Below are positions 9,401 to 38,940 of a stretch of 64,000 bases of DNA, piece after piece. The notes beneath the pieces are model-generated. The model saw only the letters and a list, made by a program, of their open reading frames with translations. It ran no database searches and had not been told where the DNA came from. Numbering within the stretch: position 1 is the stretch's first letter; each line of letters begins with the position of its first letter. Source of the DNA: Neoechinorhynchus agilis (taxonomy: Eukaryota; Animalia; Acanthocephala); assembly GCA_051530055.1 (NCBI GenBank), contig CM121342.1, positions 10,679,480-10,743,479 of the forward strand, in the 5' to 3' direction. Both the position numbers and the translations under genes were made by a program.

Positions 9401-9811
9401 TTATTATTGAGACCCACTGTTTCATATTCACCCCTTTGCCGACTGTAGACTTGGTGGGGGTCCGCAAAAACGTTATCCGTCATAACCACCTCATCTTCTT
9501 TATTTTCTGAGCAGTTTTCCTTCAGATTCCTTCTTTGGTGGTGGGCCAGAAAAACACTATCATTAATAACCACCTTTTTCTCCGGGTAACGTGGATATCG
9601 CACACACTCATAACTAACCTAAGCAGGATCTTCATCCACTTCCATTCCTCTTTCTATAGAAGGTTCCTTCGCATTATCATAATCAACCTCCATCTGACCC
9701 CCTCCTCGGTCATCCGGAGGATCGGGGTCCCATAAATCTCGATCATTCGAACTTTGTGTCAGAGCGCAGTTTTTTTAACAAAGAATTGCGCGACATGTGA
9801 TTATTGTACCC
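6475..9811 (-). mobile_element. AT-rich LINE, family A, internally deleted
   Basis: ORF1 8692-9321 plus CCHC knuckles 8540-8857. APE 7557-8317 (LGDFNS, YLDLMF). RT N-half 6795-7292 (HGFIKGKS, QLDISRAFD); no QG/YADD half is seen. Probable ~9-bp TSD aagcgatta (6466-6474) / aggcgatta (9813-9821). (TA)n tail. Confidence 0.85.
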
Positions 9812-9827
9812 AAGGCGATTAAGTAAA

Positions 9828-12800
9828 GACACACACAAACTGTGAATCATTTAGAACGAAAAAAAACCGTGCGCTATTTTTTGTTTAATTTTGCGCTCTG
9901 ATAAAATCAAAGAAACAGCCTAGTAAGCAGCCGATATCTTCTAGTATATTGGAAGATATGGCCACTACACTTTCCGGTTCAAGTTTTCCTCTGGTTTCGG
10001 ACGTAGTTATTTCCCACACGTGTGATTGTCAGGTTAGGATTTATTGTGCCCCAGTTTCTAACATTATTAAACGTCCAACCAAGAAGGATGATTTTGCTGT
10101 GAAGATCTCAAAGGAAGCTTTGGGTACCAGATCACCTGCTGAGCTTACACGAACCTATTTTTCACGTTATTTGGTCATTGGCGGCAAAGCGTCTCTTAGG
10201 CATTTCAACATCAAGAGGTTATTCGCTGCCAAGTTTCATATTATCTTCTGCTTTTTCAATGCGGAAGGGAGGGACTTATTTTTCAAAATGTTGACGGGCT
10301 TGGATATTACGTTTGTTTATCTTTCAAGAAGGGTGACCATTAGAATGTTTAATGCGCCTCAAGAACTGGATGCAGAAGGTTTTCGATTGGTAGAGAAGGA
10401 ATTAGGTGTGAAACCGATAAAATACCTATTCAGTCCAAATTCGGTTTCAGCATATTCACTTCTTTGTTCTGCCCCGGTGGAGACTGCAGACATATTGGCT
10501 TCCTCAGGTCGTGCTATCATGTCACACTGGGTGACCTTCTCCAGGTATCAGGAGTCAATTTACGACTTCAACCTGACTATATGCCAAAAATGCTCTGTAT
10601 GGGGACATACGGAATCAGGCTGCAAGTCTTCGCCGAGATGCATCTTTTGCGCTGGCTCCCACCATAAAAGGGACCGTAAGGCACAGGATAATCCTCTCTG
10701 CGCGAATTGTGGAAAGAGACACCCAGCCTTTGCTAGGAAGTGCAAGTCTCACACAATCCTTCATGGATACAGAGAATAGTAAGGGATGGGCTACTTACAA
10801 TCCTCATCCAGTTCACAGTGCTGACAACACTAAACAATCTGTTCGTAAGAAAGTGCAGCCTTGTATCTTGGAGGACATTTCACCCTTCCCTACTGACTCT
10901 ATTACTATATCCCACTCATCATCCCAAATGAGTTTAAACTTTGAAAACGAATTCTCTTAAAATCCATGCTTGCGTGGATTGTTGAGGGACTGACAAATCC
11001 GGATTTTGCTTCTCTTGCAAATGGACTATCCTTACAAGAAAATACCTCATTTAATAAAATTAGGGAAATGATTAATTTCTCTTCTACGAAAAGACAAATC
11101 TCACCATACTCTAGAGAATTGGACGAATCAAATCCAAAACGTAACAGATCTTAATATAACGGCAGAGCCTCTATGGACCCCTGACTCAAATTTTTCTTTT
11201 ATAACACATAATGCCTCTAGAGCATATAAACTTCCCACTCACCTTTCTGACTGTATAAACTCTTCTTATACGGATCTTCTCTTTTTTTCCAGAAACTGGT
11301 CCATTATCCAAACTATAAGTGCTTTCTCTTATCTCCACGTTTTACTAATCCCTCATCTAGTATAGGATTTTCCGGCGGACTTCAACTTTTTATCCTGGAT
11401 TAGTATGCCCCGAGCTGCTCTTTCAGGAGAAGAACGAGATCTTTGCGATCCAGATCGTGTCTATTAAAAACGCTCTATACGGCTCCTTCTCACCCTCTAA
11501 TCTCCATTTAACGATATGCAATCTCTATATTCAACCCAAGAAAGTTAACTCTTTTACCAAAATGTATATTAACTTCTTATTATTTTGAGATCCCGACTTT
11601 TTAGTTGGGGACTTCAATACTAATTTTTTCTCAGGCCTCAGACCGTTCTTTAAATCTCAAGACTTTTTATTACCTAAATTTCCATCTTTTCATAACTTTA
11701 GTTCAAACAGGCACTCCTTTTTGGATGGTGCAATTCTTAAAAAGAACTTTCCGTTACTCTTTTATCCCTCTCATTAATTACAGGTCCAGTATCTCCTGGG
11801 ACATGGTTTTATTTTATTTCAATCCAACGGACTCTCACTTAGAGATTTTATTATTTTAAATGACATATCCATACGAAATTTTAATAATGAACTTAGTTCC
11901 TTGTTCTCTAAAAGGAACTTGATTTCTTTTAGCATCTTTAACGACCTCATTTTACTTTCTGTAAAGAAACATCTTATCACTCAATCTTACATTAAGCGTC
12001 CTCCTGTATGTAGGACTGCAAATATTTTTTATAAAAAAGCAATCATTGCTAATCTTTTTAATAACAAAACTCTTCATGATTTCCTCATGAAGAAATTTTA
12101 CACTGAAAAATTCTTCTTTCAGATTGAACAGGAGACGAAAACCCTAGTGAATCTCAAACTTTTTGGCAAAGGTTTTTTGTCGACCATTTTAAACAAAAAA
12201 CCATCTTGTTGGAGAGCAAAGGCTGCCAATTGGATTGATTCAATTTCTTATCCCAAGGTGATTGAGGAAATTTTAAATGCGCATACATTCTCGGCTAACG
12301 CAGCCCCTCCTCTTCCCATTTTTAATAAAAAATTATTCTCTTGGAACTTAGAAATTAATTTTCTATTGGAATCGTGTAGATATCACGGTTCCGTGTCTAA
12401 TAATTCAATGAGCTGCTCCCCGAAAATCTTCGCTGCTATTAGCGAAGAGATTAAATGTTTATTCTTTTCAAAATTAAAATTTACAAAACTAGATTTTGAT
12501 GATCTTCTTCATATTAATATAGTGAAGAAAGTCTTTTTACCGAAAACCAAGGGTATTATTTCAAAACCGGCTCATATTAGAGTAATTTTAATTCAGAATC
12601 CTATAATCTCCTGCGTAGAAAGAGTTGTAAATTGACTTTTATACACGTTTTGGGAAACTAAGAAGCTTATTCCTTCTTACTTCCATGGTTTTATCAAAGG
12701 TAAAGGCGTTAACACCTTACTTGATTCCCTTAACTGTATGAACAATATTAAATTTGTTCAAAAAATTCTTATTCAGCTTGACCTGAACAAAGCATTTGAT

Positions 12801-13971
12801 GCTTTGGATAGAACCTTTTTATACAAAGCTCTTGAGGAGCTAAAAATTCCTCTGAATCTTATAAAAAAATCAATTACTTACTTGAATCAAAGTCCTTTTA
12901 TTATGAGGTGGATCCCTCAAAAACCAAATTCTTTTCCCGCTTGGGGGTCCCCCAAGGCTCTTTACTATCCCCTATTCTCTTCCTTATCTGCCTTATTTTT
13001 ATCTTTAAGAAATTGAAACTACCCAGGGGTATCTTTCCTCTTATATATGCAGACGATATCTTTCTCTTCTGCAAGGCCAGGTCTTGTCCCTCTCTTTTAT
13101 GCAACATTCAAGCAGCTCTGAGTACCCTTAGCTCAGAGTTGAAATTGGCTAATCTAGCCACCAATACGAATAAAACCTTTTTTATCCCCCTCACTAACTC
13201 GCTCTCTTCTTGGAAAGTTTTAATCAATAATTTAATTAAACACCACAATTTTAACTCCTCCAACATTAAGAAATTTACCAGGGTTCTAGGAATCGACTTC
13301 CCCTCCAAGACATTTAGATTTTAATTAATTCTTCGATTAATAATACCTTTCTAAAAATCAAATATGTTCTTAATAGAGCCAGATATCTTGATTTGAATTT
13401 TAACATTATATTAACCGTTCTAAAAACTCTCATTGGAGGATCCATCTGTTTTTTCGGGAGAGGTCGCCCTCCTGAACTTAGGTTTGCCTTCTTTTTTAGA
13501 TGTTTTAATAAGCTTCATAAACTTTTATCAAATTATAATCTTATCCATGAGCCTCTTTTATCTTTCCTCTCACGCTTATTTTTGGGAAAAATCTTATTCT
13601 TCCCTTCATTTTCTAATAAAGGTAAGTTCTTTATATCTAATGAACAGGTATTCTACTTTCCCTCTCCTTCTAAGCCTAACTTCAGCGCACAATGCTCCAA
13701 CACAATTCGATTGGAATTCAATGATGCACACACTTTTTTTACAATAAGTAATTTCTTAATGGATAAAGATAGGAAATGGTTAATGGCAAGAAAGTAATAC
13801 TACCAGGATAAAAGATTAATCTGGTCTTTTGGACCTCCGAGGTGGTCTGAGATCGACCTAATACCTGAGGTTCAACAGAGCAGACGAAGGACCAACGATA
13901 ACTTCTAGACTAACGAAAAATCCTAGTTGTTATCTTACTAGTTGTATGGCCGTGTTAAATAAATAAATAAA
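9828..13971 (+). mobile_element. AT-rich LINE, family B, full length (4.14 kb) with frameshifts
   Basis: ORF1 9949-10779 has three CCHC-type knuckles (CQKCSVWGH...CIFCAGSH...CANCGKRH). Decayed APE ~11160-11900. RT 11901-13797 (LDLNKAFD, GVPQGSLLSP, YADDI). (AAAT)n tail. TSD attaagtaaa 9818-9827 / atcaagtaaa 13972-13981. Confidence 0.9.
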
Positions 13972-14005
13972 ATCAAGTAAATGCAGTTGAATACTTATCA
14001 CACAT

Positions 14006-16056
14006 CGCGAACAAGCGTTCGTTCATGCGCTCTAATATAGTTGGGAACAAAAATTGCGCTAAAGCGAAACCAAAGGAAAAGGTACCACCAGATCCTCCGG
14101 ATATTCGAGGGAGAATTATGATAAAGAACAACAACAAGGTTGATTTGTCTGCAAGTGAGAAGGGAGTTCTCGCCGGTAGGCTTCGGTTAAAGCCCGTGGC
14201 ACATCCCCGTTTAAAGCATTACATCGTGAACCCACTAGTCTTGATTTTTTGGTTCCATCCTCAGACTCTTCTCCCCCGCCCAACTGGGTGAGCAATTCTC
14301 CATCTTTCTTAAGAGAATCTCTCAGCCCTCAGAAGCTGGGTCACATTTCTCATGACGATTTGGTTCCTGGTCTTATCAAAGAAATTAACCAACTAAAAGA
14401 ACTAGTGAGCTCTGTTATCCAAATTATTAAAATAAATTTCCTGGCCATCCGAAATAAAAATGACAATTCGGTTTATACAATTAACGCAGCAATTAAAAGG
14501 TCACACTTCCCTCCTCTCAAGGAAACTGATTTAATAAGCAAGCGAGGGAGATCCTCATCGTTCTCCGAGTAAATGACTAGATCCCTGGATTCACCTTCTC
14601 AATCTATAATGCTTCTAGAGGTTCATACCACCCTTCTAAAATTTTTCAAATTGTATCAGATACTTTGGCAGATATATTATTTTTTCAAGAGTCGGGATTT
14701 CGTACTCTTGTTAATCTACAAATATATTAAGTTGTCGTGCTGAATCCCATGTCATCCTAGGGAAACTTGTTAATGGGCTTCTCCGGTGGTTTACAAATTT
14801 TTGTTAAAAAGTCCCTAAAACCTAAAATGCTATTTCAACTCAAGAATGATATATTTGCAATACAAAAAATTGCTATTAGGAACCCACTTTCCTCTATTAA
14901 TCCATCAACAGGCGAAATACTCACCATAGCAAATTTTTATGTCGTGCCTCGGAAAGCGAGCTGCTTTATAAAGAATTACATAAATATAATTACCTTATGG
15001 GACCCTGACATCATTTGTGGTGATTTTAACAGCAATGGCCTTTGTGCCTTTATTTCCTTTTTCAGGGAATATCGAGTGCTCCTCTCTGAGTATGCATCCT
15101 TTCATAATTATACTAAGAACCATCATTCCTTTTCGGAGGGAGCTTTTATCACAACATCGATTGGGTCTAATTCTTGTCCTATCATCCAAGCTCAATCTCA
15201 ACAATATTTAGGACATGATTTTATTCGACGTTGATCGAATTAAATCTAGAAGTCGTCTTGAGGCCAATACTCGATCCATTGAAGAATTTAATTCCCAAAT
15301 ATACTCGCTCTTATCATCTAACAACACTATTACTTTAACAAACTTAAATAATATAATTACTACCGCTATGAATACTCATCTCACTAAATATCGTTTTATT
15401 AAGACAAACTTTATGCGCTCCAGCAGCTTCCTGCTGCAGCGAATCAGCGCGGCGATCCAACACGGCAATGCCGCGGCCATCAAGGAAGCTGCCGAACAAT
15501 CATAACGTATGAGTGTGTAATGAATAATAATAATCTAAATAAGCAAATTTTTTTGATAAATATTCTATACTTGCCAATTTGAGAAATGATGTGACCCTCC
15601 AGAAGGATGCTATTTCCAAATTCTTTTCTACAGTGCATTATGATTCCCTCGCTCGGGATAAAAAGCGACTTTTATCAGTGTCAGCGTTCACTAAAGAATT
15701 TTGGAATAAAATTCTTAAACGGATATTTATTTCTTGGAAATATTTGGCTGTAAATTGGATTGGGACAATTTCTTACCCAGCAGTAGTCGAACAAATTCTT
15801 AATGCTCACACATTCTCCACTTTCCTGCACCCACCTTTGTCTACCTTCACTGATAAACATTTTAGTTGGTACTTCACTACTGCCGAGCTTTAAAAATTCT
15901 GGAAAATTAATCCCTCTAGGGCAAATAACTTTTCTTGTTTCTCCCTCTTAAGTTTTTCATTAGTCTCCGAAGGGAATAAGATCTGTTTCTCTGAAAATTT
16001 TTACGACAAAATCAATATAAATGACTTAATCGAGATGAATATTGTCAGGAAAATTA
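14006..16056 (+). mobile_element. AT-rich LINE, family C, 5' half with deleted ORF1 and no RT core
   Basis: APE motifs IANFYVVP and ICGDFNS (14767-15234). The linker is homologous to family B (AVNWIGTISYP vs AANWIDSISYP). It breaks off at 16056 into the PLE remnant through ttaac microhomology. Confidence 0.8.
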
Positions 16057-16248
16057 ACTGAACGAGGCGATTAAGTAAATGCAGTTGAATGCTTATCACA
16101 CATTCGAAACATCAAAATCAATTTAATTTCCACAGTTCATAATGTGATTGGCTATTGTTGAGGAAGCATCGTAACGCCTAAATGCTTTTTTCTGTGTTGT
16201 GCGATCCCTTTCTTTAGTCTTGGTTTGATTTCTACCACAAATTTAGCT
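16055..16248 (-). mobile_element. Penelope-like GIY-YIG 3' remnant (target region)
   Basis: Same sequence as 33085-33280, whose minus strand reads as a degenerate GIY-YIG segment. Confidence 0.6.
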
Positions 16249-16249
16249 G

Positions 16250-19200
16250 GGCGCCTTTATTTTAGCAAATCGTCCATAACGTAACTGTCACAAAGCATCT
16301 ATTTTGAAATAACGGTCAGAGTGCATAACGATGAGACTCGAGTTTTCTACATAAAGCCCTTTCTCGGTTTGTGTTCACACAAAAAAATCGTTTTTTCGAT
16401 AGAAAATTAACGAATTTGACGGTTATTTGAATTGATGAATTTGCGCATCAAGGAAAATGGTTATACGCGCAAATTTAGAATTTCGCTTCGCGCGTGATAA
16501 AACTATTGATACGAGATGCTTCGAGCCGCCTGATGGCGGTGATGTGGATTACTTAGAGATGATGGATGTCAATAAGGAGAAGGGTTGTTTGCGTGAGAGT
16601 GGGGCAGGCAAAAGAATGCCTGCCGATGTTGCTGTATATAATGTTAAGGGTAATGAGATCGCCCAAAGGGTTTCTATCCTTGGAGAGGACAGTTTGTTTC
16701 CAGTTACTGATGAAGTTATGAAAAATAAGGTTTCTCTCAAAAAATGGTACTATTTTCCGAAAAATGTCAAACTCATTTCGTTAAATATCTGTCTGAAAAA
16801 AGATCCCTTAAATGGATTTCTCTAAGAAATGCAATGTTCTCATTCAGAATAGTCCCCCAGAAATGGACTAAGAAGCAAAAAAATATATGGGTGATAAGTT
16901 AGGAATAAGTTTTCTGAAGTATCTGTTAAAATCGAATTCCCAATTACCTTATGGAATGTTATGTCAAATTGATATAGACAACGCTACCAGACGGGCCGAT
17001 ATTTTTAAGAATATCGTGGCTAAATCAAAGTCGGTCTACCCTCTATGCTCCAGTCGGAGGACTCCAATATCCCTCAACAGTCGACATCTTCAAACGATCT
17101 AATTTCTCCAAATCGATCTGCAGCCTCTTCGCAAATTAAATTTTTCCTCAAATCGAGAAAGTCAGGACTTCCAATTTCTAAAATCATGGTGAAAGGCGAT
17201 AAACACGTACGGGAACACACTTTGCGAGCAATCCTCTTATGCTTTCAACTGCTTCGAATCACTTTTCTCGCTTAAATCAGGATCGGTTCAAGACGACCAC
17301 ATTTTTCCTCAATGCAATTTTTGTCGAACATGGGGCCACTTTGCTCAACATTGTCCTGACCCTGCTTCTCCAAGATGCAGCAATTGCGCAAAAACTGACC
17401 ATGCATCGGACAATTGTCCCAACAGAGACAATAAGCGATGCACGAATTGCAATTTACCACGCCCCGCTTTCTACAGAGGATGCCCAGAATTCAAAACGTA
17501 TTGGCTATGGACTATTAGTAAAGATCATAATGTTACACCTCGATACCGCTCCTTGTATCCTCCAACAACAACTTCAATGCACTCGGCACCTCTCACCTTC
17601 TGCCACTTCGTGCCCCAATGTTCGGACTTCATCAACTCAATTTTTGCACGTCGATCAATTTGAGCGGCGTCTGGATGAAGTTTGTAACAGGCTTTTCACC
17701 ATGATACAAGCCCGACTCACAGAAGCGATCACTACACTCAAAAGGAAGATCAGCCCTCTCCTCAATAATTTGGACAATCTTCCGAATTTACTTTCCTCAT
17801 GCATTCCACTTGCGGATAACTGTGCACGTAAAAGGGTTGGTAATTCGGACTTGGATACTCAAAGTTTCAAAAACAAGCCATAACACCCAATCTGTTCCCA
17901 TCTGAAAATCCTGATTCCCTTATGGACGTCGAGGTATCAGACGCTAAATTCGTCACTAACATCATCGCGAATCAATCCTCGATTATCAAAAATTGCACTG
18001 CATCCCTCACATCCAATGGAGCTGCCAGAATTCTATGATGACTCAATGGCTCAGGTAACTGTGATGGATCTGAGGGTGCTACAATGGAACTGCGGTGGGG
18101 CGACAAATTTAGCCAGACTAGCTTGTTTTATATCAGGTGTTTCGATTTTCTTCATACAAGAAACCAAAAGCATTTTTAATTCAGATCAACTATATACTAA
18201 TTTCCCCCAATTCCACTCTCCCTTTTTCACTTTTTTATCACTACTCCAGTACCTCATGCTTCTCAGGTACCTTTATCGGGTTTCCAATCAACCCTAAACC
18301 CCAAGTTAATTTCGTCATTTTCCTCAATTGACATGCCACTTTTTTATAATTTCCTTCAATGAAAAAATTATCTCTCGTAAATCTTTACATCAGACCAAAC
18401 TTCATTCACAAACCTTCCATTAAAAATAAAGTGAAGTGGATCCTCAAAGCCAACATAGATTTTATCGTTGTGGATCTCAACGATCCATCTTTAAAATGGA
18501 CAATCTGCCATTAATTCCGTGAAGTCTTCCCATAATCTAGCCATACACACCTCGCCCTCCTTTCACAATCTCACCACTAACGTCCATTCTTTTTTAGACC
18601 TTCGATTCAAGTAGATTGACAAATTTCTTCTTTTGACTTCCTTGGTCATGATATTTTATTTTGGTCTCTTGGTCCTAGCAATGTTTTACGTAAAGTCTAT
18701 CACAATTCTCCACTCAATGTTGCCTTTTTCGGTTTTGTTAGTCGGAATCTCCTTGGTTTCTTTTTTACTAAAAATAACCGTCGTCATACTCTTCCTTATG
18801 TCAACAACGCCCTTAATTCAGTTGCTGAGACGAATCACTGGCGATTCGACTAAAGGAGCATTCCTTCTACGCTGCATCCGTCCTTTCGACCGTTACACCA
18901 GGACGGCAGCTGAGTGATCCAGAGCGGTGGTGTGAATGATCTTATTGTTTAAAATAAAGATCGCAATTGAAAACTTTAAAATTCCATTTTATTTTATACT
19001 GTAAGATCCTTCTCTCGTCCATACGAAAGCCGTTCTCTTCGCTTTCTTGGGCGGCAACTTTTCTTAGTCAATCGTTCCCCCTCCTGGTTAAATTTGTTAT
19101 CGAATCATTATTGGGGTGCCTGGTGCCGAATTCATCAACAAAAGGACGCGGACCTTCTTGCTGACCTACAAACTTTCACATCAAAATGGTGGAACACTTC

Positions 19201-28330: not shown

Positions 28331-28629
28331 TAGGTAAGTATCATTTCCTTACCACACATTCCATTCTGGTTAAAGGTTGAGGTTTGACAGCAGCTGCTCT
28401 CTTGCCTTTGAGGATATCGGAATCCTCATCGAGAAGTTGGTTGAACGAGTGTCTCCACCCCTGTTCCTCCATGGTCATCAGGAGGATCAGGTTCTCTCGA
28501 AATCGTAGTTGTTGTTGGCACGCATTTTTCATTGTTACGAAAATTGCGCATTTTTGACAAAACCACTAGGTGCAATATCGATTACCACTTCTGTAACGCA
28601 ATGTAGATTTATCGCTACAAGGACCCAAA

Positions 28630-29090
28630 AAACGCTTTCCCTGCCAAGCATTCTAGAACCCACTAATCTTTGCAGATTAGATTGGCGTGGCTGTCTTCCT
28701 TGGCGGGAGGGAAAATGGTTGTTGTGGGATGCAACTTGTGTGGACACGTTGGCAAACTCCAACATCAGCCACTCGAAAAAAGGTTCAGGAGGAGCGACGA
28801 CGGCGGCAGAGGAGCGGAAATGCTCGAAATACAGGGAGCTAATCCGAAACTACCATTTTGTCCTCTTCGGTGTGGAAACGTATGGGGCCTTGGGAGGGTC
28901 GGCACTGGCCCTTGTGAAGGACTTGGGGGAACGAATCAACGCGGCGACTGGAGAGCCAAGATCGACTTCGTTCCTAGCCCAAAAAATAAGCATTGCGGTG
29001 CAGTGGGGCAATGCGGCCAGCATTTTGGCCAGCGCCGATGAATAGGAGCGGAGAGGTTGTAAACAATGCACAGATTGCGTATAAAAATTA
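28630..29090 (+). mobile_element. CRE-like RLE C-terminal fragment
   Basis: LPWREGKWLLWDATCVDT...FGVETYGALG...ISIAVQWGNAASI, the RLE tail of CRE-like elements. Confidence 0.85.
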
Positions 29091-29094
29091 AATG

Positions 29095-30169
29095 TCTTTT
29101 TTTAAAAATAAATAATCTTATGGAAACTAAATCTGTTTATTATGACATAGAACCTGGCCGTACTCGTTTTTTCTCTAAATACGGTGTACCACAGGGATCT
29201 CCATTGTCCCCTACTCTGTTTCTAATTGTAATTATATATTTTTAAGAATATTGTGGCTAAATCAAAATCGGTGTACCCTCTGATTTACGCAGATGACATT
29301 TTTTATCTTTTGTAAACGTAAAAGTAGGACTTTCCTCTTAAATCATATAGATTCCTTTTTAATAAGGTTACAGAACAGCCTCAAGGAAGGTAATTTAGTC
29401 GTTAATCCATCGAAAACAGTTATCCTACCACAAGATCTGGCTTCGCATTCAACATTTTCAGCTTTTTTATTCAAGAGACACAACCGAATACTTGGCATAG
29501 ATGAAATATCAAATAGGCAACGTTTTTGATTAATTCCTCGCTCTCTGGAATATTTTATAAAGCAAGAAATCTCTTGAATCGTATGCTTCGCATTGGGCTC
29601 ACTTTTAATTATATTTATAGAATTTCAATTACGCTTTTAGGAGGTTCATTATGTTTCTTTGCAATGGGGCGTCCTCCTGAATTTCGATTGGCCTTTTTCA
29701 ATCAGTTTATTAAAAAAACTGAGTCTCCTCCCGACCTCACATCGTATTGTTTACTAAAATCTGGTATTATTCTCCTCATTTTCCAGCCAATAAATTTTTA
29801 TTTTTTAAGAATGAAATTTATTTAGTCTCTTTAAAAGCGAAGGCACTAAATATCAAACCTGATCATATTCTGATAAAACTTAATCTCACCAAGAAGCTTG
29901 ACTTTTATATTTTATTCACTAATTTAATTCAAAAGGACAAACTGGAAATTATTGTGTAATTGAGTCTTTATTTTAGACCAGTAAACAGGTCAGTTTTTTC
30001 TATGGAGGGAAAGGAGGAGTCCGGGGAGTACTGAGATCTACTCTAACTCGAGACTTCCTTTCTCGTCTTACTACTAACATATACATTGAGATTTGGATAA
30101 TGTATGCAAATTCACAGATTCTTTAAAAAAGACATTGAATATATGCGCAACAAATAAATAAATATAAAA
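29095..30169 (+). mobile_element. AT-rich LINE, family F, 5'-truncated
   Basis: GVPQGSPLSP and IYADDI motifs. The C-terminus is homologous to family B (GGSLCFFAMGRPP). An A-rich tail abuts tcacacat at 30170. Confidence 0.85.
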
Positions 30170-31506
30170 TCACACATTTGTGTCATCAAATTCAATTTGC
30201 TTTCCACAGTTCCTAACATGATTGGCTATTGCCAGGGAAGCATCGTAACGCCTAAATGATTTTTGTGTTGTGCGATCCCTTTCTTTAGTCTTGGTTTGAT
30301 TTCTACCACAAATTTAGCTGAGCAGTCTTTGCAGTGGGCAGCGTATGTAACTTCATGCTTTTCACATTTTGACTTATTTTTAAGGATGCCTGCAAGGTTT
30401 TACCACCGTTTTGTAGTACACAAAATTATCGTCTTGTCGCAGGGAAGGCAAATCTCATTTAAGATCCGATGGGAACAAGTGAACGCCCGATAGTATTGCA
30501 GATTCCGAAGTGTAGGATTCAAAGTAAACGCCTGTTGATAAGGGTCTTAAACTTGGCTTGAAGGTCAAATGTTTTTTTCGGGTGAATATCTCGGAGTATT
30601 TCGATAATTTGTTTATTCCGACGAACCGTCCTCCAGTTCCTTAGGGGACTCTCTTATACTACAATTGATTGGCACAGAGCATAAAGGGGCTTTAGGGTGC
30701 ACGCATTGAACGCGAAATGCTGATTTAGCGAATGAATGTAAACGGGATTTCGTCGAGGGTCGTCGTAAACACACGTATCAAATCTCCAAGTTTCGCCACT
30801 ATCATGGGTTTCGCTGATCGAGGGATACGCCGGATTAAGCGAACGTTCCGTCCTATGAGGTTCCTTAGTGCAGTCAAATCTTAATTGACCGGAATGATTG
30901 TGGGTATAATATTTTCCGGGCAGCAGTAGTTTAAAATGTAATCCTACGAAGGATATCGCTGGATATTATGGGTTATGTTTTTTCGGTGAAAATGTTTCAA
31001 AAATCGGACAACCTAAAAATTAAGTTTGGGGCAAATAATTTAATTTTATGCATCATTAGAATACGAGCGACGTATTTCGACTTTCTCCGTCCGTGATTTA
31101 CGTTGGCTTAAAACAAGAACTTCAATTTTCCAGAACTTTTGAATGATTGAAAAAGGTCTCCAAAGTTGTCCATTGGTTATTGTTTTTCCGGTAGGACAAT
31201 TTGTTTTCTTGTCCTCAAAATTTTGGGAGCTAAGACTTAAAGAGTTATATTGTATTTTTGATAAAACCAAGAGGATGCCTTTTTACCTTGAAACATATCA
31301 TCTAACCAACACGAGTTTAGGAGTAACGACAAATTCTCCTGAACGATTTGTTAATGGAAGCTTTTTCCGCTATTTTATCGTTAGACCACTGACGGCTATT
31401 GGTTGGATTTTCTAATTGTCGCTATGATTTTAATTATGATTCTTTTACACGCTAAACACGAAAATCGAATTCATCTTTATTTCGATAAGAATGTCTTGTT
31501 GCCATT

Positions 31507-32718
31507 CTACCCACTAACTAAAGATTTTGGTTCCACTGAACTTCCAAGAGTATTTTTAACTTTTACATACACTGGTTCAATTAATTCTTTATGTTTTTTG
31601 TTTGCCACATGATTAATCATCTTTTCTAATATTTCAATGATTTGTGACGCTTGAACGTCTTCAGCTGTTATATCCTTTGCCATGATTTCCTGGAACATTC
31701 GACGAATCCAGTCTAGATTTCATATCCTGTAATCCTTATGAAGTCCAATACGCAATCCTCTGCAATAAAATGACAAATCATGATTAATTGGTTTAAGCGA
31801 TTCTTGGGTCCTTTCAATGGCCTCGGAACTTTTCTCACTGTGCGATGATCCTGCAGATTTAACAAGATTCTTTTTTCTGGGAAATAATTTCCTGGCTTTA
31901 CAATTAAAAACGTATTTCCGGCGCTTTGGGGCAGCTATAACGACTTCTTTCTGATCCAATGATTCAGACATTTTCGCTGATTTGTCGTCGACGCTTTGGG
32001 CAGCGCTAGGTTCTTCGCTCATTGGAAATGTGCGCTTTCTCTTCAGCGAGGCTTTTAACTCCTCAGAACTCTTTGCTGCGGCTAATCTTGCCTCTCGGAT
32101 TGTTTCGCCGAATTTGTCGGCCAATTTCTGCATGAGGTATTTATACCGAATGTTTTTTGTATTATTATTCATCTGCAACAACATCGGAACTACTCCTGAG
32201 CACTGGATCTCCTGCGCAGAGAATTCTCCATAGATCATTTCTCCAAATACTCGGCATACCCAATCTCCGCTGATTATTGTAAAATTTTTGTCAATGCCGA
32301 AAGAGAGTTTATAGGCAATTTCTCCAAGCATTCCATTTTGCGTCGTCGTTTCTCCTCTTAAATTATCCTTTTTGGTTTTTTCTTTCATCAATATTTTATC
32401 TTTATTGTTTACCGGCTTTCTGCTAATTTCAGCCGAGCCTTTAGAAATCTTTTCATCACCACCTTTAGCCTTGGAGTCAGCCCTTGTTTGCCATTCACTG
32501 ATGTTTGAGGATAATTGGACTTTAACTTCATGACCCGTATCCTGTGCCGGACGTTTGATTTCTGTATTTTCGAATGATTCTGAATTTTTTCTTTTGCGGT
32601 TCGCTACATTTTTATCTTCGGTTGAGGCTTTCGTCATATCTGAAGCTGATTGAAAATTCGCAGGTCGAGTTCTCGTTTCGTCTTCTTTGCCGATATTTGT
32701 TTCTTGAGCCTTGTTCAT
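31507..32718 (-). pseudogene. Copy 2 of double-domain ORF, one frameshift near 31720
   Basis: ORFs 31720-32718 and 31507-31698 together reproduce the 4877-6088 protein. Confidence 0.85.
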
Positions 32719-33094
32719 CGATATTACTTTTATAGGAGTGATATGATCTCAGTTTGCATCATTCACGTTGCGCTTTTGAGACGGGAAATAACATTGTGTT
32801 TGTGTTTTCTCAATAGTACATATTTACTTGATTTTCCATGTTTATTGAAGTGACAAATAATAGAAAAACTAATTACAAAAATAATTTAAAGCTCAAGACG
32901 GTAAAAAACAATTCCAAATGTTTGCATAGAAAAAATAGATTCTTTATCGCAGTGTTATCCTGTGGACTAAATAAGTTCGGGCAACGGTTGCGCCTTTGTC
33001 CACTTGAACCCATGGAAAGCGCTGCATTGTTTTTCCCAACGGAAATTTAAAACTAATTATGGCTTTATTATTCGGTCCATCGGTTTAACTGAAC

Positions 33095-33875
33095 AAGGCG
33101 ATTAAGTAAATGCAGTTGAACGCTTATCACACATTCGCGTCATCAAATTTAATTTGATTTCCACAGCTCCTAACATGATTGGCTATTGCTAGGGAAGCAC
33201 CGTAACGCCTAAATGTCTTTTGTGTTGTGCGATCCCTTTCTTTAGTCTTGGTTTGATTTCTACCACAAATTTAGCTGAGCTGTCTTTGCAGTGGGCCGCG
33301 TATGTAACTTCATGCTTTTCACATTTTGACTTATTTTTAAGGATGCCTGCAAGGTTTTACCACCGTTTTGTAGTACACAAAATTATCGTCTTGTCGCAGG
33401 GAAGGCAAATCTCATTTAAGATCCGATGGGAACAAGTGAAGGCCCGGTAGTATTGCAGATTCCGAAGTGTAGGATTCGAAGTAAACGCCTGTGGAGAAGG
33501 GTCGGAAACTTGACTTGAAGGTCAAATGTTTTTTTCGGGTGATTATCTCGGAGTATTTCGATAATTTGTTTATTCCGACGAACCGTCCTCCAGTTGCTAA
33601 GGGCTCTCAAATACTACAATTGATTGGCACAGAGCATAAAGGGGCTGTAGGGTGCACTCATGGAACGTGAAACGCTGATTTAGCGAATGAATGTAAAGGG
33701 GATTTCGTCGAGGGTCGTCGTAAACGCACGTATCAAATCTCCAAGTTTCGCCACTATCATGGGTTTCGCTGATCGAGGGATACGCCGGATTAAGCGAACG
33801 TTCCGTCCTATGAGGTTCCTTAGTGCAGTCAAATCTTCATTGGCCGGAATGATTGTGGGTATAATATTTTCCGGG
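33095..33875 (-). mobile_element. Degenerate Penelope-like RT thumb + GIY-YIG (also 30170-30920)
   Basis: Across frameshifts the minus strand gives FDTCVYDDPRRNPLYIH, RALSNWRTVRRNKQIIEILRDNHP, LAGILKNK, YAAHCKD.SAKFVVEIKPRLKKGIAQHK and AIANHVRSCGNQIKFDDANV, in the order expected for a PLE ORF. Confidence 0.7.
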
Positions 33876-34459
33876 CAGCAGTAGTTTAAAATGTAATCCT
33901 ACGAAAGATATCGCTGGATATTATGGGTTATGTTTTTTCGGTGAAAATGTTTCAAAAATCGGACAACCTAAAAATTATGTTTGGGGCAAATCATTTAATT
34001 TTATGCATCATTATAATACGAGCGACGTATTTCGACTTTCTCCGTCCGTGATTTACGTTGGCTTAAAACAAGAACTTCAATTTTCCAGAACTTTTGAAAG
34101 ATTGAAAAAGGTCTCCAAAGTTGTCCATTGGTTATTGTTTTTCCGGTAGGACAATTTGTTTTCTTGTCCTCAAAATTTTGGGAGCTTAGACTTAGAGTTA
34201 TATTGTATTTTTGATAAAACCAAAAGGATGCCTTGTTACCTTGAAACATATTATCTAACCAACACGAGTTTAGGAGTTAAGACAAATTCTCCTGAACGAT
34301 TTTTTAATGGAAGCTTTATCGGCTATTTTATCGTCCGATCACTGACGGCTATTGGTTGGATTTTCTAATTGTCGCTATGATTTTAATTATGATTCTTTAA
34401 CACTCTAAATACAAAAATCGAGTTCATCTTTATTTCGAAAAAAATGTCTTGTTGCCATT

Positions 34460-35671
34460 CTACCCACTAACTAATGATTTTGGTTCCACTGAACTTCCAA
34501 GGGTATTTTTAACTTTTGCATACACTGGTTCAATTAATTCTTTATGTTTTTTGTTTGCCACATGATTAATCATCTTTTCTAATATTTCAACGATTTGTGA
34601 CGCTTGAACTTCTTCAGCTGTTATTTCCTTTGTCATGATTTCCTGGAACATTCGACGAATCCAGTCTAGATTCCATATACTGTAATCCTTATGAAGTCCA
34701 ATACGCAATCCTCTGCAATAAAACGACAAATCATGATTAATTGGTTTAAGCGATTCTTGGGTCCTTTCAATGGCCTCCGAACTTTTCTCACTGTGCGATG
34801 ATCCTGCAAATTTAACAAGCTTCTTTTTTCTGGGAAATGATTTCCTGGCTTCACAATTAAAGACATATTTCCGGCGCTTTGGGGCAGGTATAACGACTTC
34901 CTTCTGATCCAATGATTCAGACATTTTCGCTGATTTGTCGTCGACGCTTTGGGCAGCGCTAGGTTCTTCGCTCATTGGAAATGTACGCTTTCTCTTCAGC
35001 GAGGCTTTCAACTCCTCAGAACTTTTTGCTGCGGCTAATCTTGCCTCTCGGATTGTTTCGCCGAATTTGTCGGCCAATTTCTGTATGAGGTATTTATACC
35101 GAATGTTTTTTGTATTATTGTTCATCTTCAACAACATCGGAACTATTCCTGAGCGCTGGATTTCCTCCGCGGAGAATTCTCCATAGATCATTTCTCCAAA
35201 TACTCGGCATACCCAATCTCCGCTGGTTATTGTAAAATCTTTGTCAATGCCGAAAGAGAGTTTATAGGCAATTTCTCCGGCATTCCATTTTGTCGACGTT
35301 TCTCCTCTAAATTATCTCGTTTGGTTTTTTCTTTCATCAATATTTATATTCTTTATTGTTTACCGGCTTTCTGCTAATTTCAGCCGAGCCTTTAGAAATC
35401 TTTTCATCACCACCTTTTGCCTTGGAGTCAGCCTTTGTTTGCCATTCACTGATGTTTGAGGATAATTGGACTTTAACTTCATGACCCGTATCCTGTGCCG
35501 GACGTTTGATTTCTGTATTTTCGAATGATTCTGAATTTTTTCTTGCGGTTCGGTTAAGTATTTTTTATCTTCGGTTGAGGCTTTCGTCATATCTGAAGCT
35601 GATTGAAAATTTCGTGGTCGAGTTCTCGTTTCGTCTTCTTTGCCGATATTTGTTTCTTGAGCCTTGTTCAT
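34460..35671 (-). pseudogene. Copy 3 of double-domain ORF, frameshifted in the N-terminal part
   Basis: ORFs 35360-35671 and 34460-35191 match the copy-1 protein. The C-terminal domain is intact. Confidence 0.85.
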
Positions 35672-36199
35672 CGATATTACTTTTATAGGAGTGATATGAT
35701 CTCAGTTTGCATCATTCACGTTGCGCTTTTGAGACGGGAAATAACATTGTGTTTGTGTTTTCTCAATAGTACATATTTACTTGATTTTCCATGTTTATTG
35801 AAGTGACAAATAATAGAAAAACTAATTACAAAAATAATTTAAAGCTCAAGACGGTAAAAAACAATTCCAAATGTTTGCATAGAAAAAATAGATTCTTTAT
35901 CGCAGTGTTATCCTGTGGACTAAATAAGTTCGGGCAACGGTTGCGCCTTTGTTCACTTGAAACCATGGAAAGCGCTCCATCGTTTTTCCCGACGGAAATT
36001 TAAAACTTATTATGGCTTTATTATTCGGTCCATCGGTTTAACTGAACAAGGCATTTGAGATAAGGTATTGAAGAAGGTATAGTTGACTAATCACGTTCCC
36101 AATATAGAGAATCTTTATTACGTACGCCACGCGATTCTATGCTAAAGGCTAAAATCATCTAAAAAATCCGTTGTTTAATTAACGGTTATTAAGTAATGA

Positions 36200-38940
36200 T
36201 TTGTAAGGTGCGGAACAACTTCTTTGATTTTATTAACATTCACCGGTTACACACACAACAGCAAAACGTTTCAACAATCACCACCGTCCACGAAGAAGAG
36301 GCATCGCTCTCCCCTCAGTGGTCGCGATCACACTCGCTGCGTTTCCTCTTTGGATCGCGAGACCAATGTTTTGGCGTAGGAAGGCACCAGCTCCTGTATT
36401 TCCTTTCTTAGCCTGGAGTCTACCCGATAAATCCTTCGTAAATCTAAGTGCCGAGCTACCGAGCGCACCAAGAGTCTCCACTCCGAAGGATACAAAAACG
36501 TGAGACCTACTTAATTCTTTATATTTCGCCACTTTTCGATCCTCCGCGGAAGTAGCTGCTCTCCCCCTGGGGACTGCACCACAAACCTCCTGTTACTTGC
36601 CGCGAACGTGTCTGCACACGTGGCGTCCCAGAGAAAACACTTGCCTTCTCGCCACGGGAATACAGTTACGCCATCCGGACGAGGACCATCGAGTCGGCAC
36701 TGGTTGCTCGGCTCTAAAATGTTTGGGACGTTCATCGCATTTAGGGCACGCGAAATTACGTCGTTCAATTCAGCATGCCGTGAGAAACGACCCCCTGATT
36801 TGTTGCAAACAAGACCATGTCTCCCCAGTGGATCCACGATCATTCCAAACTGGCAACGATGTTCGACACAAATCGATAGACCTAATCTGAGGGAAACTCC
36901 GATCCGAACTGCTTCGTCTACGAGGAGTGTTCCTGCGAATGCAATGGGTAGCCACTCAAATTTCAGAGTTACAAAAGGCCATCTCATCTTTTGCAAATGG
37001 TTCTTTAGCGGCGTCACGTGGAAAGAAGACAAGTTTTATTATTATATCTACATTGGTCAAATGCTTGTTGTCCTTCCTTCATTCGGCGAAAGGAAACTTC
37101 TTCCGGCTGCCCGTCATTCACGTGTAAGAAGTCGCCGCCACATACCTCCCCTCCAGTGTCGCCGCACTAATCCGTTCCGTCCTGGAAACGTGCCGGTCTT
37201 TATACTTGACGACCGCAGCGAGTCGTCTGTTGCTTGAGAGGCGGTACCGGGGGCAGCACCGGATCAGTGATTTGTGGTACAAGACATGTTTGCAGCACCT
37301 TGTCGAAGGTGCTTTATCGCGTCTCGGCATCGTAAAGCTTCCTGCTGAAGGATAGAACTACCAGGTGCCGTCTTTGGCCCGTAGTTTGTGGGCTGCGCCG
37401 ACTGCCAGTGCTGAGGCATCGGTGACATTGGCGAACGCTGCTTCCTTGTTGGATTGAGCAAGGAGGTCCGCGTGTCACGACGCTGCGCTGGGCCTGATGT
37501 CGAGCAACCGACTTGAACCTCGGTGTGATGACGGCGTGTTGCTGGCAGCTGGGCCTGGTCAGGAAGCTGACCAGGCCGGTCTCGTCGGGGTCACCAATTT
37601 AGCGGCGTCACGGAAAGAAGACGAAGTATTTTAATATTATTATTATCTACATTGGTCAAATGCTTGTCGTCCTTCCTTCATTCGGCGAAAGAAGTCGCCG
37701 CCACAGTTCGGGTCACGGGCTTGACGGACTAAGGCCTCAGCACCTAAAGGACATGATGTCCTTTTCAACTGGTGAAGCAGCTCTCTCTCTAGGAAGTGCG
37801 CTTTCTAGAATAGTCGACCGCCTGACTGGAGAGGACCTGAACCCCGTTGCAAAGGACCTATTTTTCGGAGCCTCATTGTGTGCCCTCACAAAAAAAGAAG
37901 GTGTGATCCGTCCCATCGCCGTATCTTCGACGATACGCCGACTCGCAGGAAAAATTCTCTGCAAACGTATTACAGAGAAAACCGGACAGCAACTTTGTCC
38001 ATTCCAACTGGGCTGCTGCACATCCTGCGGGGCGGAAGCTATTGTCCACTCGCTCCGAAACTTTGCTACGAGAAGCTCAGAGCCGTGCGTGATTCTTAAG
38101 TGCGATTTTCGGAACGCCTTTAACTTTCTCAATAGAGAAAACATGTTCTGCGCAATTAGGGATCACGCACCAGAAGCCTTCCAGTATTTTCTCAATGCCT
38201 ACGGGACGGCGACTCCTTTGCTTTTCGAAGATTACCTCATTTGGTCCGAAAGAGGAGTGCAGCAAGGAGATCCCCTCGGTCCAATCTCATTCTCCCTAAC
38301 AGTAAATCCAATAGCTCATTCTCTCCATTCCAGCTTCAACGCTTGGTACTTGGATGACACTACGCTCGGAGGTGATCCCTCCGTTGTACTGCGCGATTTG
38401 GAGACGCTGATTAGGGAGACCTCGAAGATGGGCATTGAGCTTAATGCTGGAAAATGTGAGCTCCTTGTACTGAATATTGGAGACGCCGCCAAAGTCAAAG
38501 AACTAATGGCTGGGTTCGAAGCCGTAGCTCCAGGCCTGAAACTCGTGACTCGGGAACAACTCAGCCTCCTGGGCAGTTGCGTCTTCGATTCAAATGTGGA
38601 AGATGAGATCGGCCATATCATACCGAAACTTTCGTTGCTGTGCGATAGGATGTGCGCTCTCTCGGCTCATGAAGCCTTGTTTCTCATAAAGAACGCGCTT
38701 TGTCCCCTTTGGGGTAGAGACGTATGGAGCGCTCGGCAGCTCGGCACTCACTCTGCTCCAGGATCTCTCGAAGAAATTGAGAGAGGCAACCGGAGACTCA
38801 AGAGCAGGCGTATTCCTTCGACAAAATATCTCGCTAGCAGTACAACGGGACAATGCTGCCAGCGTGATGGCGACGGTCGAGGAAGGACAAAAGCTGGAAT
38901 TCGGCGGGAGGTGGTGAGTGTGTTAATTGTCGAGAGATGA
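36200..38940. mobile_element. Scrambled CRE-like element(s): RLE (-), N-terminal part (-), RT and RLE tail (+)
   Basis: 36278-37003 minus: HGLVCNKSGGRFSRHAELND, RPDGVT, LWDATCADT. 37690-38697 plus: GLDGLRPQHLKD, IRPIAV, DFRNAFN, GVQQGDPLGP, YLDD. 38697-38910 continues VPFGVETYG after an internal deletion. Confidence 0.9.
37004..37691 (+). repeat. ~90-bp direct repeat pair (37004-37092 and 37598-37691) at CRE breakpoints
   Basis: tttagcggcgtcacg...tctacattggtcaaatgcttgt.gtccttccttcattcggcgaaag occurs twice. Confidence 0.9.

Follow-up and report, generated by a model that had tools for sequence, protein, structure and literature searches.

A tandem array of an orphan gene and PLE remnants

The window, a stretch of 64,000 nucleotides, comes from Neoechinorhynchus agilis chromosome CM121342.1 (16.4 Mb), where, at ~10.7 Mb, copies of a 403-codon ORF alternate with pieces of a Penelope-like element (PLE). 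The array is a direct tandem of 30170-33126 (2957 bp) and 33127-36052 with 95.7% identity, and its 2.96-kb unit reads, on the minus strand, a decayed PLE piece (reverse transcriptase (RT) C-terminal region to GIY-YIG), the ORF and its 3' flank. Two full units and a third PLE piece are present in the window. PLE and flank are joined at the motif aaactactgc in both units (30923/30922 and 33878/33877), and the unit boundary (33126/33127) is internal PLE coding sequence, with no new joint. The features are:

4147..6474, minus: copy 1, with an intact 403-codon ORF (4877-6088); PLE tail only; native 3' flank runs past aaactactgc
6491-9387: further non-LTR insertion
9388..13971, plus: LINE ending in (AAAT)n, with its insertion point in the PLE tail at ...ACTTAAT/CGCC
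13972..14010, minus: PLE piece of ~40 nt (...GTGTGATAAG..ACTTGAT), on the far side of the LINE that split the PLE tail 5' of copy 1
16054..16252, minus: PLE 3' fragment (last 157 nt of body, 26 nt, first 16-19 nt of tail)
30170..30922, minus: PLE remnant at the array's 3' end on this strand; RT C-terminal region, linker and GIY-YIG with stops and frameshifts, cut at ...GTGTGA
30923..31506, minus: native 3' flank of ORF copy 2, stop codon to aaactactgc
31507..32718, minus: ORF copy 2, 403 codons in gapless alignment to intact copies; nonsense at W333 truncates domain 2
32719..32946, minus: 228 nt 5' of the copy 2 ATG, common to all copies, near-identical in both tandem units
32947..33877, minus: unbroken ~930-nt PLE 3' part separating copies 3 and 2, colinear with the independent PLE copy L002/P0005, in four sections:
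33877-33127, minus: RT C-terminus and GIY-YIG
33126-33101, minus: 26 nt, GIY-YIG C-terminal coding
33104-33011, minus: 95-nt tail
33010-32947, minus: ~64 nt, 3'-UTR-like
33878..34459, minus: native 3' flank of ORF copy 3, meeting the PLE at aaactactgc
34460..35671, minus: ORF copy 3 (gene model ACOME3_007127), its frame disrupted by six small N-terminal indels
35672..36052, minus: upstream region of copy 3 with PLE tail only (35962-36052); no PLE body 5' of this copy
36059..36215, minus: innexin gene fragment running from the end of one exon through the intron into the next exon; 94.9% identity with positions 8806-8962 of the parental locus L003
42656..43419, plus: copy 4, an inverted fragment with the last ~100 nt of the ORF, 3' flank and native extension

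A preliminary description of this DNA had put forward the 2.96-kb tandem at 30170-36052, the double-domain ORF, the PLE remnant with GIY-YIG and the joint at aaactactgc; the coordinates proved exact and each of these elements was confirmed, the remnant by HMMER homology. Neither tandem ORF is intact, copy 2 carrying the W333 stop and copy 3 its six indels, which the ACOME3_007127 annotation spans by an intron. The units differ by 4.3%, each with its own indels and disabling mutations, and this divergence speaks strongly against an artefact of collapse or duplication in the assembly. A precedent for misassembly in this repeat-rich sequence lies nearby: CM121342.1:11,091,232-11,140,361 forms a 49,130-bp palindrome without a mismatch (100.000% identity), which doubles two gene copies and looks like a fold-back assembly error; with the tandem units this far apart and copies 1, 2, 3 and L003 also mutually divergent, however, we consider it highly improbable that the tandem and the other copies arose in this way. 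Divergence between the units is uneven: the 290 nt 5' of the ATG are 99.7% identical (1 mismatch), the best-conserved part of the unit, versus ~95% elsewhere, which points to gene conversion.

The remnant derives from a canonical PLE

The PLE remnant had no match in Pfam or in a word-indexed protein search, and a full HMMER scan of 1.84 billion proteins returned eight matches. Among them were P0005, a PLE fragment of the same genome (E=3e-17, 46% identity), P0009 and P0012, both with RVT_1 and a GIY-YIG at the C-terminus, and GIY-YIG-only fragments. The region from RT C-terminus to GIY-YIG aligns to residues 506-706 of P0009, and the GIY-YIG of P0005 and P0012 are 36% identical. At the DNA level, 33420-33100 is 73% identical to L002/P0005, and the extended alignment of the PLE 3' part to that copy scored 39 versus a null of 15.2 +/- 2.1. 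Tests of the extension, run with negative controls, gave z of 4.1-4.7, the 3'-UTR homology of the last 64 nt resting on one related copy. The remnant holds only the region C-terminal to RVT_1, truncated 5' after the RT core, and no RT core was found adjoining it. As judged by homology, it is a 5'-truncated, decayed canonical endonuclease-positive (EN+) PLE, of which the RT C-terminus, linker and GIY-YIG are left. The fragment at 16054..16252 is a paralogue of the sequence at the internal unit boundary 33126/33127; no further annotated PLE proteins of the P0005/remnant family were found.

The remnant shares with canonical EN+ PLEs (Penelope/Poseidon, Neptune, Nematis) the RT C-terminal region followed by a C-terminal GIY-YIG, and the 5' truncation. 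The layout is also alike: in the head-to-tail order a PLE copy has its 3' end upstream of the ORF that follows, and a truncated copy in inverted orientation lies close by. Craig et al. 2021 (PMC8557442) describe partial tandems, neighbouring copies that are inverted and truncated, and non-autonomous head-to-tail derivatives of PLEs. The phylum fits as well, since in the acanthocephalan P. laevis PLEs account for 8.9% of the genome (PMC8557442). However, the ORF past the PLE 3' end is an unrelated two-domain gene, not an RT-EN ORF, and the PLE is decayed, with no hammerhead ribozyme: Rfam gave no match at the gathering threshold in the whole window, and none even at E<=10 in 30100-33500. Unlike a pseudo-LTR tandem of such elements, each unit encloses 2.1 kb of non-PLE gene sequence. 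The repeat unit also differs from canonical PLEs in having host flanks in common with other copies, which suggests that it was duplicated as DNA.

Rotifers and acanthocephalans together form the Syndermata, and the telomeres of rotifers carry Terminons/Athena, giant EN-minus PLEs with accessory ORFs. The array recalls them in that a PLE is associated with a non-RT ORF in Syndermata, a parallel drawn in the preliminary description. Terminons are EN-minus and telomeric, whereas the element described here has GIY-YIG and lies at an interior position (10.7 of 16.4 Mb), the window contains no telomere-type repeats (no runs of three or more) and no hammerhead, and one small ORF stands in place of a giant multi-gene unit. 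We rejected identity with Terminons/Athena on these grounds.

The ORF family encodes predicted helical bundles

The ORF belongs to an orphan family whose protein relatives come only from N. agilis, all within ~430 kb. Its annotated members lie on one chromosome, CM121342.1, from 10.68 to 11.14 Mb; the survey covered annotated proteins and ~150 kb of genome DNA, and unannotated copies may exist elsewhere. Six full-length copies were recovered: copies 1, 2 and 3, the two copies LA and LB, and the copy at L003, a gene-dense locus (RPL22, RING, innexin, intact ORF, WD40, arfaptin) taken as parental. Four independent copies (L003, copy 1, LA and LB) are intact over 403 codons. For most copy pairs dN/dS is 0.28-0.45 across the whole ORF and drops to 0.15-0.25 within the two domains. 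On these intact frames and substitution patterns, the family is under purifying selection and qualifies as a functional protein-coding gene family.

The protein consists of an N-terminus and a linker, both disordered, basic and NLS-like, and two domains that are 34% identical (pairwise E=2e-15). AlphaFold, working from a shallow alignment, predicted both domains as helical bundles (pLDDT ~78-80). TND/IBD structures prevailed among the best PDB matches in Foldseek, namely the MED26 TND (TM 0.74-0.79, rmsd 1.3-2.0 A), TFIIS LW, LEDGF IBD, IWS1 and PNUTS, all TND/IBD matches having E-values of only 0.01-1. No Pfam Med26 or LEDGF match was obtained at E<=1, and a profile search with the ORF domains did not find the TND in PDB sequences. 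Each domain models as a TFIIS-N-terminal/LEDGF-IBD-like bundle. The likeness to TND and LEDGF-p75 IBD bundles lies in the predicted fold of both domains; the difference is that two domains occur in tandem in one orphan protein without sequence-level match in Pfam or PDB.

LEDGF tethers lentiviral integrase. By analogy, the ORF could be a true accessory gene of an endonuclease-bearing PLE lineage, placed downstream of RT-GIY-YIG, whose bundles would anchor the element, or products of it, on the host transcription-elongation/chromatin machinery; the gene-dense copy would then be a domesticated or truncated insertion. We consider this improbable. No ORF homologue was found beside the related PLE copy L002 of the same genome, and the intact master PLE carrying the ORF that the preliminary description had envisaged did not appear: no such autonomous element was seen in the window or in L001-L006, a small part of the genome.

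A short PLE tail is kept upstream of every copy

PLE 3'-terminal sequence lies ~230 nt from the ATG, 5' of the ORF, in every copy examined. The proposal that the ORF is always preceded by the PLE 3' end holds for this terminal sequence and fails for the 0.75-kb RT-C-terminal/GIY-YIG piece, which precedes one full-length copy in six (copy 2, a pseudogene). Intact copies (L003, 1, LA and LB) keep only ~65-160 nt of PLE tail, and beyond the tail the upstream sequence differs among the full-length copies. Because intact copies lack it, the large remnant is clearly dispensable.

The tail may contribute promoter sequence. That these 65-160 nt supply a transcription start or core promoter would fit either copying history, and is suggested by their retention in 6/6 full-length copies while further upstream sequence differs, by the near-identity of the 290 nt 5' of the ATG, and by the transcription start sites of Penelope and Chlamys-3, which lie in the pLTR (PMC8557442). 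However, gene conversion can account for the high upstream conservation, a single related copy underlies the match of the last 64 nt with a PLE 3' UTR (z 4.1-4.7), the family's gene identifiers are absent from one supplement of the N. agilis transcriptome paper, and the large remnant is not needed. We therefore hold promoter function to be a tentative reading, possible but doubtful.

Shared host flanks point to duplication as DNA

What is the origin of the copies? Next to copies 3 and LB lies a 157-bp piece of the innexin gene, the parental copy's neighbour, and copy 1 and L003 have a contiguous flank in common downstream past the gene's 3' end. The innexin fragment and the parental downstream flank suggest that these copies were made as DNA, and the sharing of flanking host DNA on both sides (innexin upstream, native flank downstream) points to DNA-level duplication. 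Copies 1 and 4 had been thought to diverge at aaactactgc; instead, they and L003 have ~100 nt in common past this motif, the native 3' flank.

Local clustering, co-duplication of a neighbour-gene fragment and flanks, gene conversion, some pseudogenised copies and nested LINE insertions are all as in ordinary segmental or tandem duplication. The array differs from it in its recurrent breakpoints at PLE positions and in the PLE kept 5' of every copy. Indeed, several features argue against duplication as DNA: (i) the AAT/CGCC boundary recurs at the LINE flank of copy 1 and LA and at the innexin-fragment flank of copy 3 and LB; (ii) what lies next to the PLE 5' end (TGCC...) is not the same in the window as in L001; (iii) the retained upstream PLE lengths are nested (~65, 160 and 930 nt), resembling 5' truncation; (iv) copy 4 is inverted and 5'-truncated and ends near the poly(A) signal; (v) copies L003, 1, 2 and 3 form a near-star, burst-like phylogeny with 3.5-4.1% divergence; and (vi) on this model, a deletion would have had to remove most of the PLE at L003.

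Alternatively, the ORF could be the cargo of a PLE-derived composite retroelement, with a unit made up of PLE 3' part, ORF and 3' end, or of a read-through or template-switch chimera. Copying by the PLE reverse transcriptase would then account for the 5' truncations, for the partial tandem with its head-to-tail units and for the inverted, truncated copy, all of them usual features of PLE insertions. Craig et al. 2021 (PMC8557442) also describe host genes that were retrotransposed in trans by PLEs. All copies begin in colinear PLE 3' sequence, with the nested 5' ends given above, except copy 4, which begins inside the ORF and whose inverted 5' end faces the array, as in PLE insertions (PMC8557442). 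In two unrelated 3' contexts, copy 1/L003 and copy 4, the ends lie only a few nt apart, ~17 nt past AATAAA, and the phylogeny is star-like. Like non-autonomous PLE derivatives (MRC1/Chlamys) and host genes copied in trans, the unit is head-to-tail and combines PLE 3'-terminal with unrelated internal sequence; unlike those derivatives, its 3' end is not the PLE 3' end, and its copies are clustered with shared host flanks. These flanks, present on both sides, tell against cargo, and the copies that share them hold longer PLE parts than the gene-dense copy, so that not all can be independent insertions. Moreover, the annotated copies all lie within 430 kb, the last PLE piece of the array is without a 3' end of its own, the internal joints stop 100 nt before the 3' end that the copies have in common, a target-site duplication was not observed, no hammerhead was found even at E<=10, and no master element was found, the related PLE L002 being without the ORF. 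We thus regard the cargo reading as rather unlikely. The preliminary description had inferred a PLE-mobilised or PLE-promoted cargo gene; the clustering within ~430 kb, the shared host flanks and the lack of an upstream PLE segment at most copies do not support mobilisation, and as a whole its PLE reading of the array is partly supported.

On balance we lean, at somewhat better than even, toward a lineage-restricted gene that sat beside a decayed PLE and was multiplied by DNA-level duplication rather than by retroelement transport. According to this history, the 403-codon gene lay ~230 nt past the 3' terminus of a 5'-truncated canonical EN+ PLE, an adjacency that would be ancestral. The PLE-plus-gene segment would have multiplied as DNA within ~430 kb of CM121342.1, in tandem, dispersed and possibly inverted positions, and the head-to-tail array would have arisen with a new joint between the gene's 3' flank (aaactactgc) and the PLE RT C-terminal region. 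Copies may then have been trimmed differently by (AAAT)n-tailed LINE-like insertions into the PLE 3' end, followed by deletions and patchy gene conversion, as both tandem ORFs gained disabling mutations; the order of duplication and trimming is that which we infer. Traces of such trimming are visible in the window: the LINE at 9388..13971 flanks copy 1 and LA on their upstream side, and the array's left PLE piece is cut by a plus-strand element whose (AAAT)n tail ends at 30169. At both flanks the (AAAT)n tails abut PLE sequence, indicating insertions into the PLE.

Structure of the tandem array

A direct repeat search and a self-BLAST of the window both resolved two head-to-tail units with 95.7% identity, matching exactly the coordinates proposed in the preliminary description. 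Two partial units and a short piece are present as well:

Unit copies in the window
4147-6474, minus strand: partial unit with copy 1 of the ORF
16054-16252: short piece across the unit boundary
30170-33126 (2957 bp): tandem unit with copy 2 (ORF 31507-32718, minus strand)
33127-36052: tandem unit with copy 3 (ORF 34460-35671, minus strand)
42656-43419, inverted: partial unit, copy 4

On the minus strand, each unit reads through a decayed stretch, a spacer of ~0.4 kb and a 403-codon ORF into a 584-nt 3' flank, which stops at aaactactgc, right where the next decayed stretch starts. The decayed stretch contains stops and frameshifts, and its GIY-YIG-type motifs are still legible. The sole novel joint within the array is aaactactgc/TGCC..., which sets the 3' flank of the gene against the C-terminal region of a Penelope-like element (PLE) reverse transcriptase (RT). 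The array is not a plain duplication of the single-unit arrangement found in locus L001, because the boundary at 33126/33127 contains 23-27 nt of PLE absent from the outer flanks.

Copies 1 and 4 had been described as entering different sequence past aaactactgc. Instead, both continue for ~100 nt in the same native sequence, which they share with the parental locus L003 and which ends ~17 nt past AATAAA; the common 3' end reads ...GAAAGTATTMAG. No target-site duplications were found around copy 4.

Identity of the decayed stretch

A frame-corrected translation of the remnant (232 residues) gave nothing informative in Pfam, and word-indexed homologue searches with this translation or with P0005, the protein of a related PLE copy, returned the query alone. 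Run in full with HMMER against 1.84 billion representatives, the remnant yielded eight matches: P0005 itself (E=3e-17, 46% identity), encoded by a fragment at 2.07 Mb on the same chromosome (locus L002); P0009 and P0012, each with RVT_1 and, at the C-terminus, a GIY-YIG domain; three GIY-YIG-only proteins; and two evident false positives (a Sushi-repeat and a PPR-repeat protein). The remnant aligns with residues 506-706 of P0009, from just past the RT domain through the GIY-YIG, and the GIY-YIG domains of P0005 and P0012 are 36% identical over 87 residues. These matches bear out the earlier reading of the stretch as a 5'-truncated PLE RT-thumb/GIY-YIG segment, with the architecture of a canonical EN+ PLE, bearing the GIY-YIG endonuclease. 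The comparison with Terminons has to be abandoned: Terminons are EN-minus and telomeric, whereas the N. agilis element carries a GIY-YIG domain and lies inside the chromosome, with no telomeric repeats in the window.

Rfam yielded no hammerhead ribozyme, either at the gathering threshold across the window or at E<=10 in 30100-33500, and inspection by eye turned up no convincing core. A hammerhead was thus ruled out as the cause of the recurrent AAT/CGCC boundary. In L001, no PLE RT sequence was found immediately before the remnant. Further RT-core fragments, sharing 27% identity with P0009 (E 1e-10 to 1e-17), occur in L001 (3148-3789, minus strand) and L002 (12732-13517, plus strand), detached from the remnant itself; the one in L002, 3.7 kb downstream of the PLE piece encoding P0005, could belong to a partial tandem.

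PLE sequence upstream of every copy

How far does the PLE extend towards the gene? L002 DNA aligns with 33420-33100 at 73%, unbroken across 33127/33126, so the unit boundary is internal to the PLE, and ...GTGTGA is followed by 26 nt coding for the ISVQ... portion of the GIY-YIG domain. A wider alignment to the L002 PLE 3' end, running from these 26 nt over the 95 nt that follow (33104-33011) and into the beginning of the sequence common to all copies, scored 39 against 15.2 +/- 2.1 for shuffles. The last ~64 nt alone gave z values of 4.1-4.7 against L002, equalled by 1-3 of 1000 shuffles, with two negative controls. Between copies 3 and 2 there is thus a single unbroken PLE 3' part of ~930 nt (33877-32947), ending ~228 nt upstream of the ATG. 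The 95-nt tail, which matches the L002 PLE 3' end, was also considered as a remnant of the 745 bp that separate the innexin gene from the ORF in L003, and this was rejected because the alignment was no better than with shuffled sequence. A PLE end at ...ACTTAAT beside a (TTTA)n target was rejected because PLE homology extends beyond that point; the AT-rich runs are (AAAT)n tails of antisense LINE-like insertions.

Every copy, including LA and LB, the two ORF copies at 11.09-11.14 Mb, starts within the PLE 3' part, at three depths:

PLE sequence upstream of the ORF copies
Copy 2: ~930 nt
Copies 1, 3, LA and LB: ~160 nt, from AATCGCC
L003: ~64 nt (L003 9707-9770)

The preliminary description counted a lack of the PLE segment in most ORF copies as evidence against itself; most copies do lack the 0.75-kb segment upstream, and its sole bearer, copy 2, is a pseudogene.

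Copying of the gene and later insertions

L003 is gene-dense, with RPL22, a RING protein, an innexin, the ORF, an RbAp48-like WD40 protein, an arfaptin and an ankyrin protein. A 157-bp piece of this innexin gene, with intron sequence and 94.9% identical, adjoins copies 3 and LB on their upstream side (window 36215-36059); in L003 itself, the piece sits 745 bp further from the ORF. Past the 3' end of the gene, copy 1 and L003 share a contiguous flank, broken in L003 by a 448-bp insertion. Because copies share host flanks on both sides and the annotated copies cluster in 430 kb, these comparisons point to copying by duplication of DNA.

Upstream, copy 1 and LA are flanked by a LINE on the plus strand, with its (AAAT)n tail directly against ...ACTTAAT. 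On its far side, ~40 nt of PLE are left (window 13972-14010, L001 7650-7688), so the PLE tail was split there by insertion. At the left flank of the array (<=30169), an (AAAT)n tail abuts ...GTGTGA. Two of the seemingly precise boundaries are explained by these insertions. Among the features that sit less easily with the history favoured below are the innexin-fragment flank, whose junction with the PLE tail falls within 2 nt of the LINE insertion point, the PLE 5' end TGCC..., which adjoins different sequence in L001, and the near-equidistance of L003 and copies 1, 2 and 3.

What is the origin of this family? We lean, with moderate confidence, towards the following history: (i) a 5'-truncated PLE would have lain just upstream of a lineage-restricted gene; (ii) duplication at the DNA level would have multiplied the PLE-plus-gene segment into dispersed copies and the tandem array; and (iii) LINE insertions, deletions, conversion and disabling mutations would have followed. 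A less likely alternative, kept in view because the inspection covered ~150 kb of the genome, is that the ORF is a PLE-borne or PLE-mobilised composite. The nesting of the PLE depths, and a copy 4 that is inverted and 5'-truncated, recall the anatomy of PLE insertions, in which such truncated and inverted forms occur (Craig et al. 2021, PMC8557442), but this reading conflicts with the host flanks that copies share, the clustering of the copies, the missing 3' end of the array's last PLE piece and a related PLE in L002 without the ORF beside it. The locus is a worked example of a transposon-rich acanthocephalan chromosome region building a small family of orphan genes, with tandem and dispersed duplication at the DNA level, gene conversion, bombardment by LINEs and fast pseudogenisation of some copies as the observed steps.

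Divergence among copies

Six independent full-length copies (L003, copies 1, 2 and 3, LA and LB) and one fragment (copy 4) span ~430 kb. L003 and copies 1, 2 and 3 are nearly equidistant (3.5-4.1% divergence). LA and LB cluster together (32 shared sites) although their flanks differ, and the tandem units are 99.7% identical across the 290 nt 5' of the ATG versus ~95% elsewhere, a pattern that suggests gene conversion in both cases. Mismatches between the tandem units are patchy, with 0-4 per 200 nt in 32627-33026 versus 35580-35975 and in 30733-31232 versus 33690-34185, and 8-15 elsewhere. These two low-mismatch tracts, one over the candidate promoter and ORF 5' end and the other across the aaactactgc joint, likewise suggest conversion. 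The retained PLE tail (window 32947-33104, L003 9707-9770) might conceivably act as a promoter, a tentative proposal that, if true, would make it an exaptation of a PLE 3' end. The gene identifiers are absent from the supplement of the N. agilis transcriptome paper.

The ORF and its product

In a collection of 5.8 billion proteins, the ORF is represented by only four clusters, all from N. agilis and all on the 16.4-Mb chromosome CM121342.1, of which the window covers about 10,679,480-10,743,479. ACOME3_007154 lies in L003 at 10.79 Mb; LA, LB and their mirror images lie at 11.09-11.14 Mb (L001, L004, L005, L006). All 403 codons are intact in L003, copy 1, LA and LB. Copy 2 aligns without gaps to the intact copies and has a stop at W333, and in copy 3 six small indels interrupt the N-terminal region, which the annotated model P0004 spans with an intron. 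Pairwise dN/dS is 0.28-0.45 overall and, within the two domains, 0.15-0.25 for most pairs (0.32 for one), as in a protein under constraint; in the linker it is near or above 1 for some pairs.

The product's halves share 34% identity with each other (pairwise E=2e-15), as its earlier description as a double-domain protein implied. Neither Pfam (no informative match) nor sequence comparison of the domains with solved structures (no match) placed it. An AlphaFold2 model from a shallow alignment contains two helical bundles (residues 129-229 and 315-392, pLDDT ~80), the rest being disordered, lysine/serine-rich and bearing KRKR and KRRK motifs. When the whole model or domain 1 alone was compared with the PDB by Foldseek, relatives of the TFIIS N-terminal domain ranked top, with E-values of only 0.01-1: MED26 TND (TM 0.74-0.79, rmsd 1.3-2.0 A), TFIIS LW, LEDGF/p75 IBD, IWS1 and PNUTS. 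We treat a TND/IBD-like nuclear adaptor as a lead from modelling, not a classification. Should a master PLE prove to carry the ORF, we know of no earlier accessory gene in an EN+ PLE, and this one would have a chromatin-tethering-type fold.

Annotation and other features

The P0004 model (34460-35671) looks repaired, its intron skipping the frameshifts of copy 3. P0002 (L001 10001-10309) looks chimeric, with an N-terminal exon from antisense LINE sequence, and P0015 has 580 aa against 492 for P0002 despite their mirror-image loci. CM121342.1:11,091,232-11,140,361 (L001/L004/L005/L006) is a 49,130-bp palindrome, 100.000% identical to its own reverse complement and centred near 11,115,797, which doubles gene models ACOME3_007244-007247. 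Either an inverted duplication of very recent date or a fold-back error of the assembly would produce it, and because the palindrome is perfect its mirror copies are not independent. Gene models spliced around frameshifts and this suspicious palindrome are flagged as annotation problems.

Elsewhere in the window, three 191-bp tandem units (98% identity) occupy 19892-20468. A 2.4-kb dispersed repeat links 1634-4091 with 38960-41354 (93% identity), and 146-194 bp of it recur at L003 12367-12559, downstream of the parental gene copy. Two opposed copies of another repeat, at 17239-17883 (plus strand) and 41768-42178 (minus strand, adjoining copy 4), encode a similar ORF ('...LHLDTAPCILQQQLQ...'). 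No Pfam match was found for the ORFs at 36278-37032 (minus strand) and 28509-29045 (plus strand), which show the pattern CCHC...RPD...D...K and, at the C-terminus, a conserved '...QRGNA' block; by eye, they resemble a non-LTR retrotransposon's restriction-enzyme-like endonuclease or C-terminal domain. Ordinary host genes occupy the right end of the window:

Host genes at the right end of the window
55524-56051: NAC-domain protein (BTF3-like)
57838-58593: NEDD4/Bsd2-family membrane protein
61504-62684: ATG4-type Peptidase_C54, split over two ORFs
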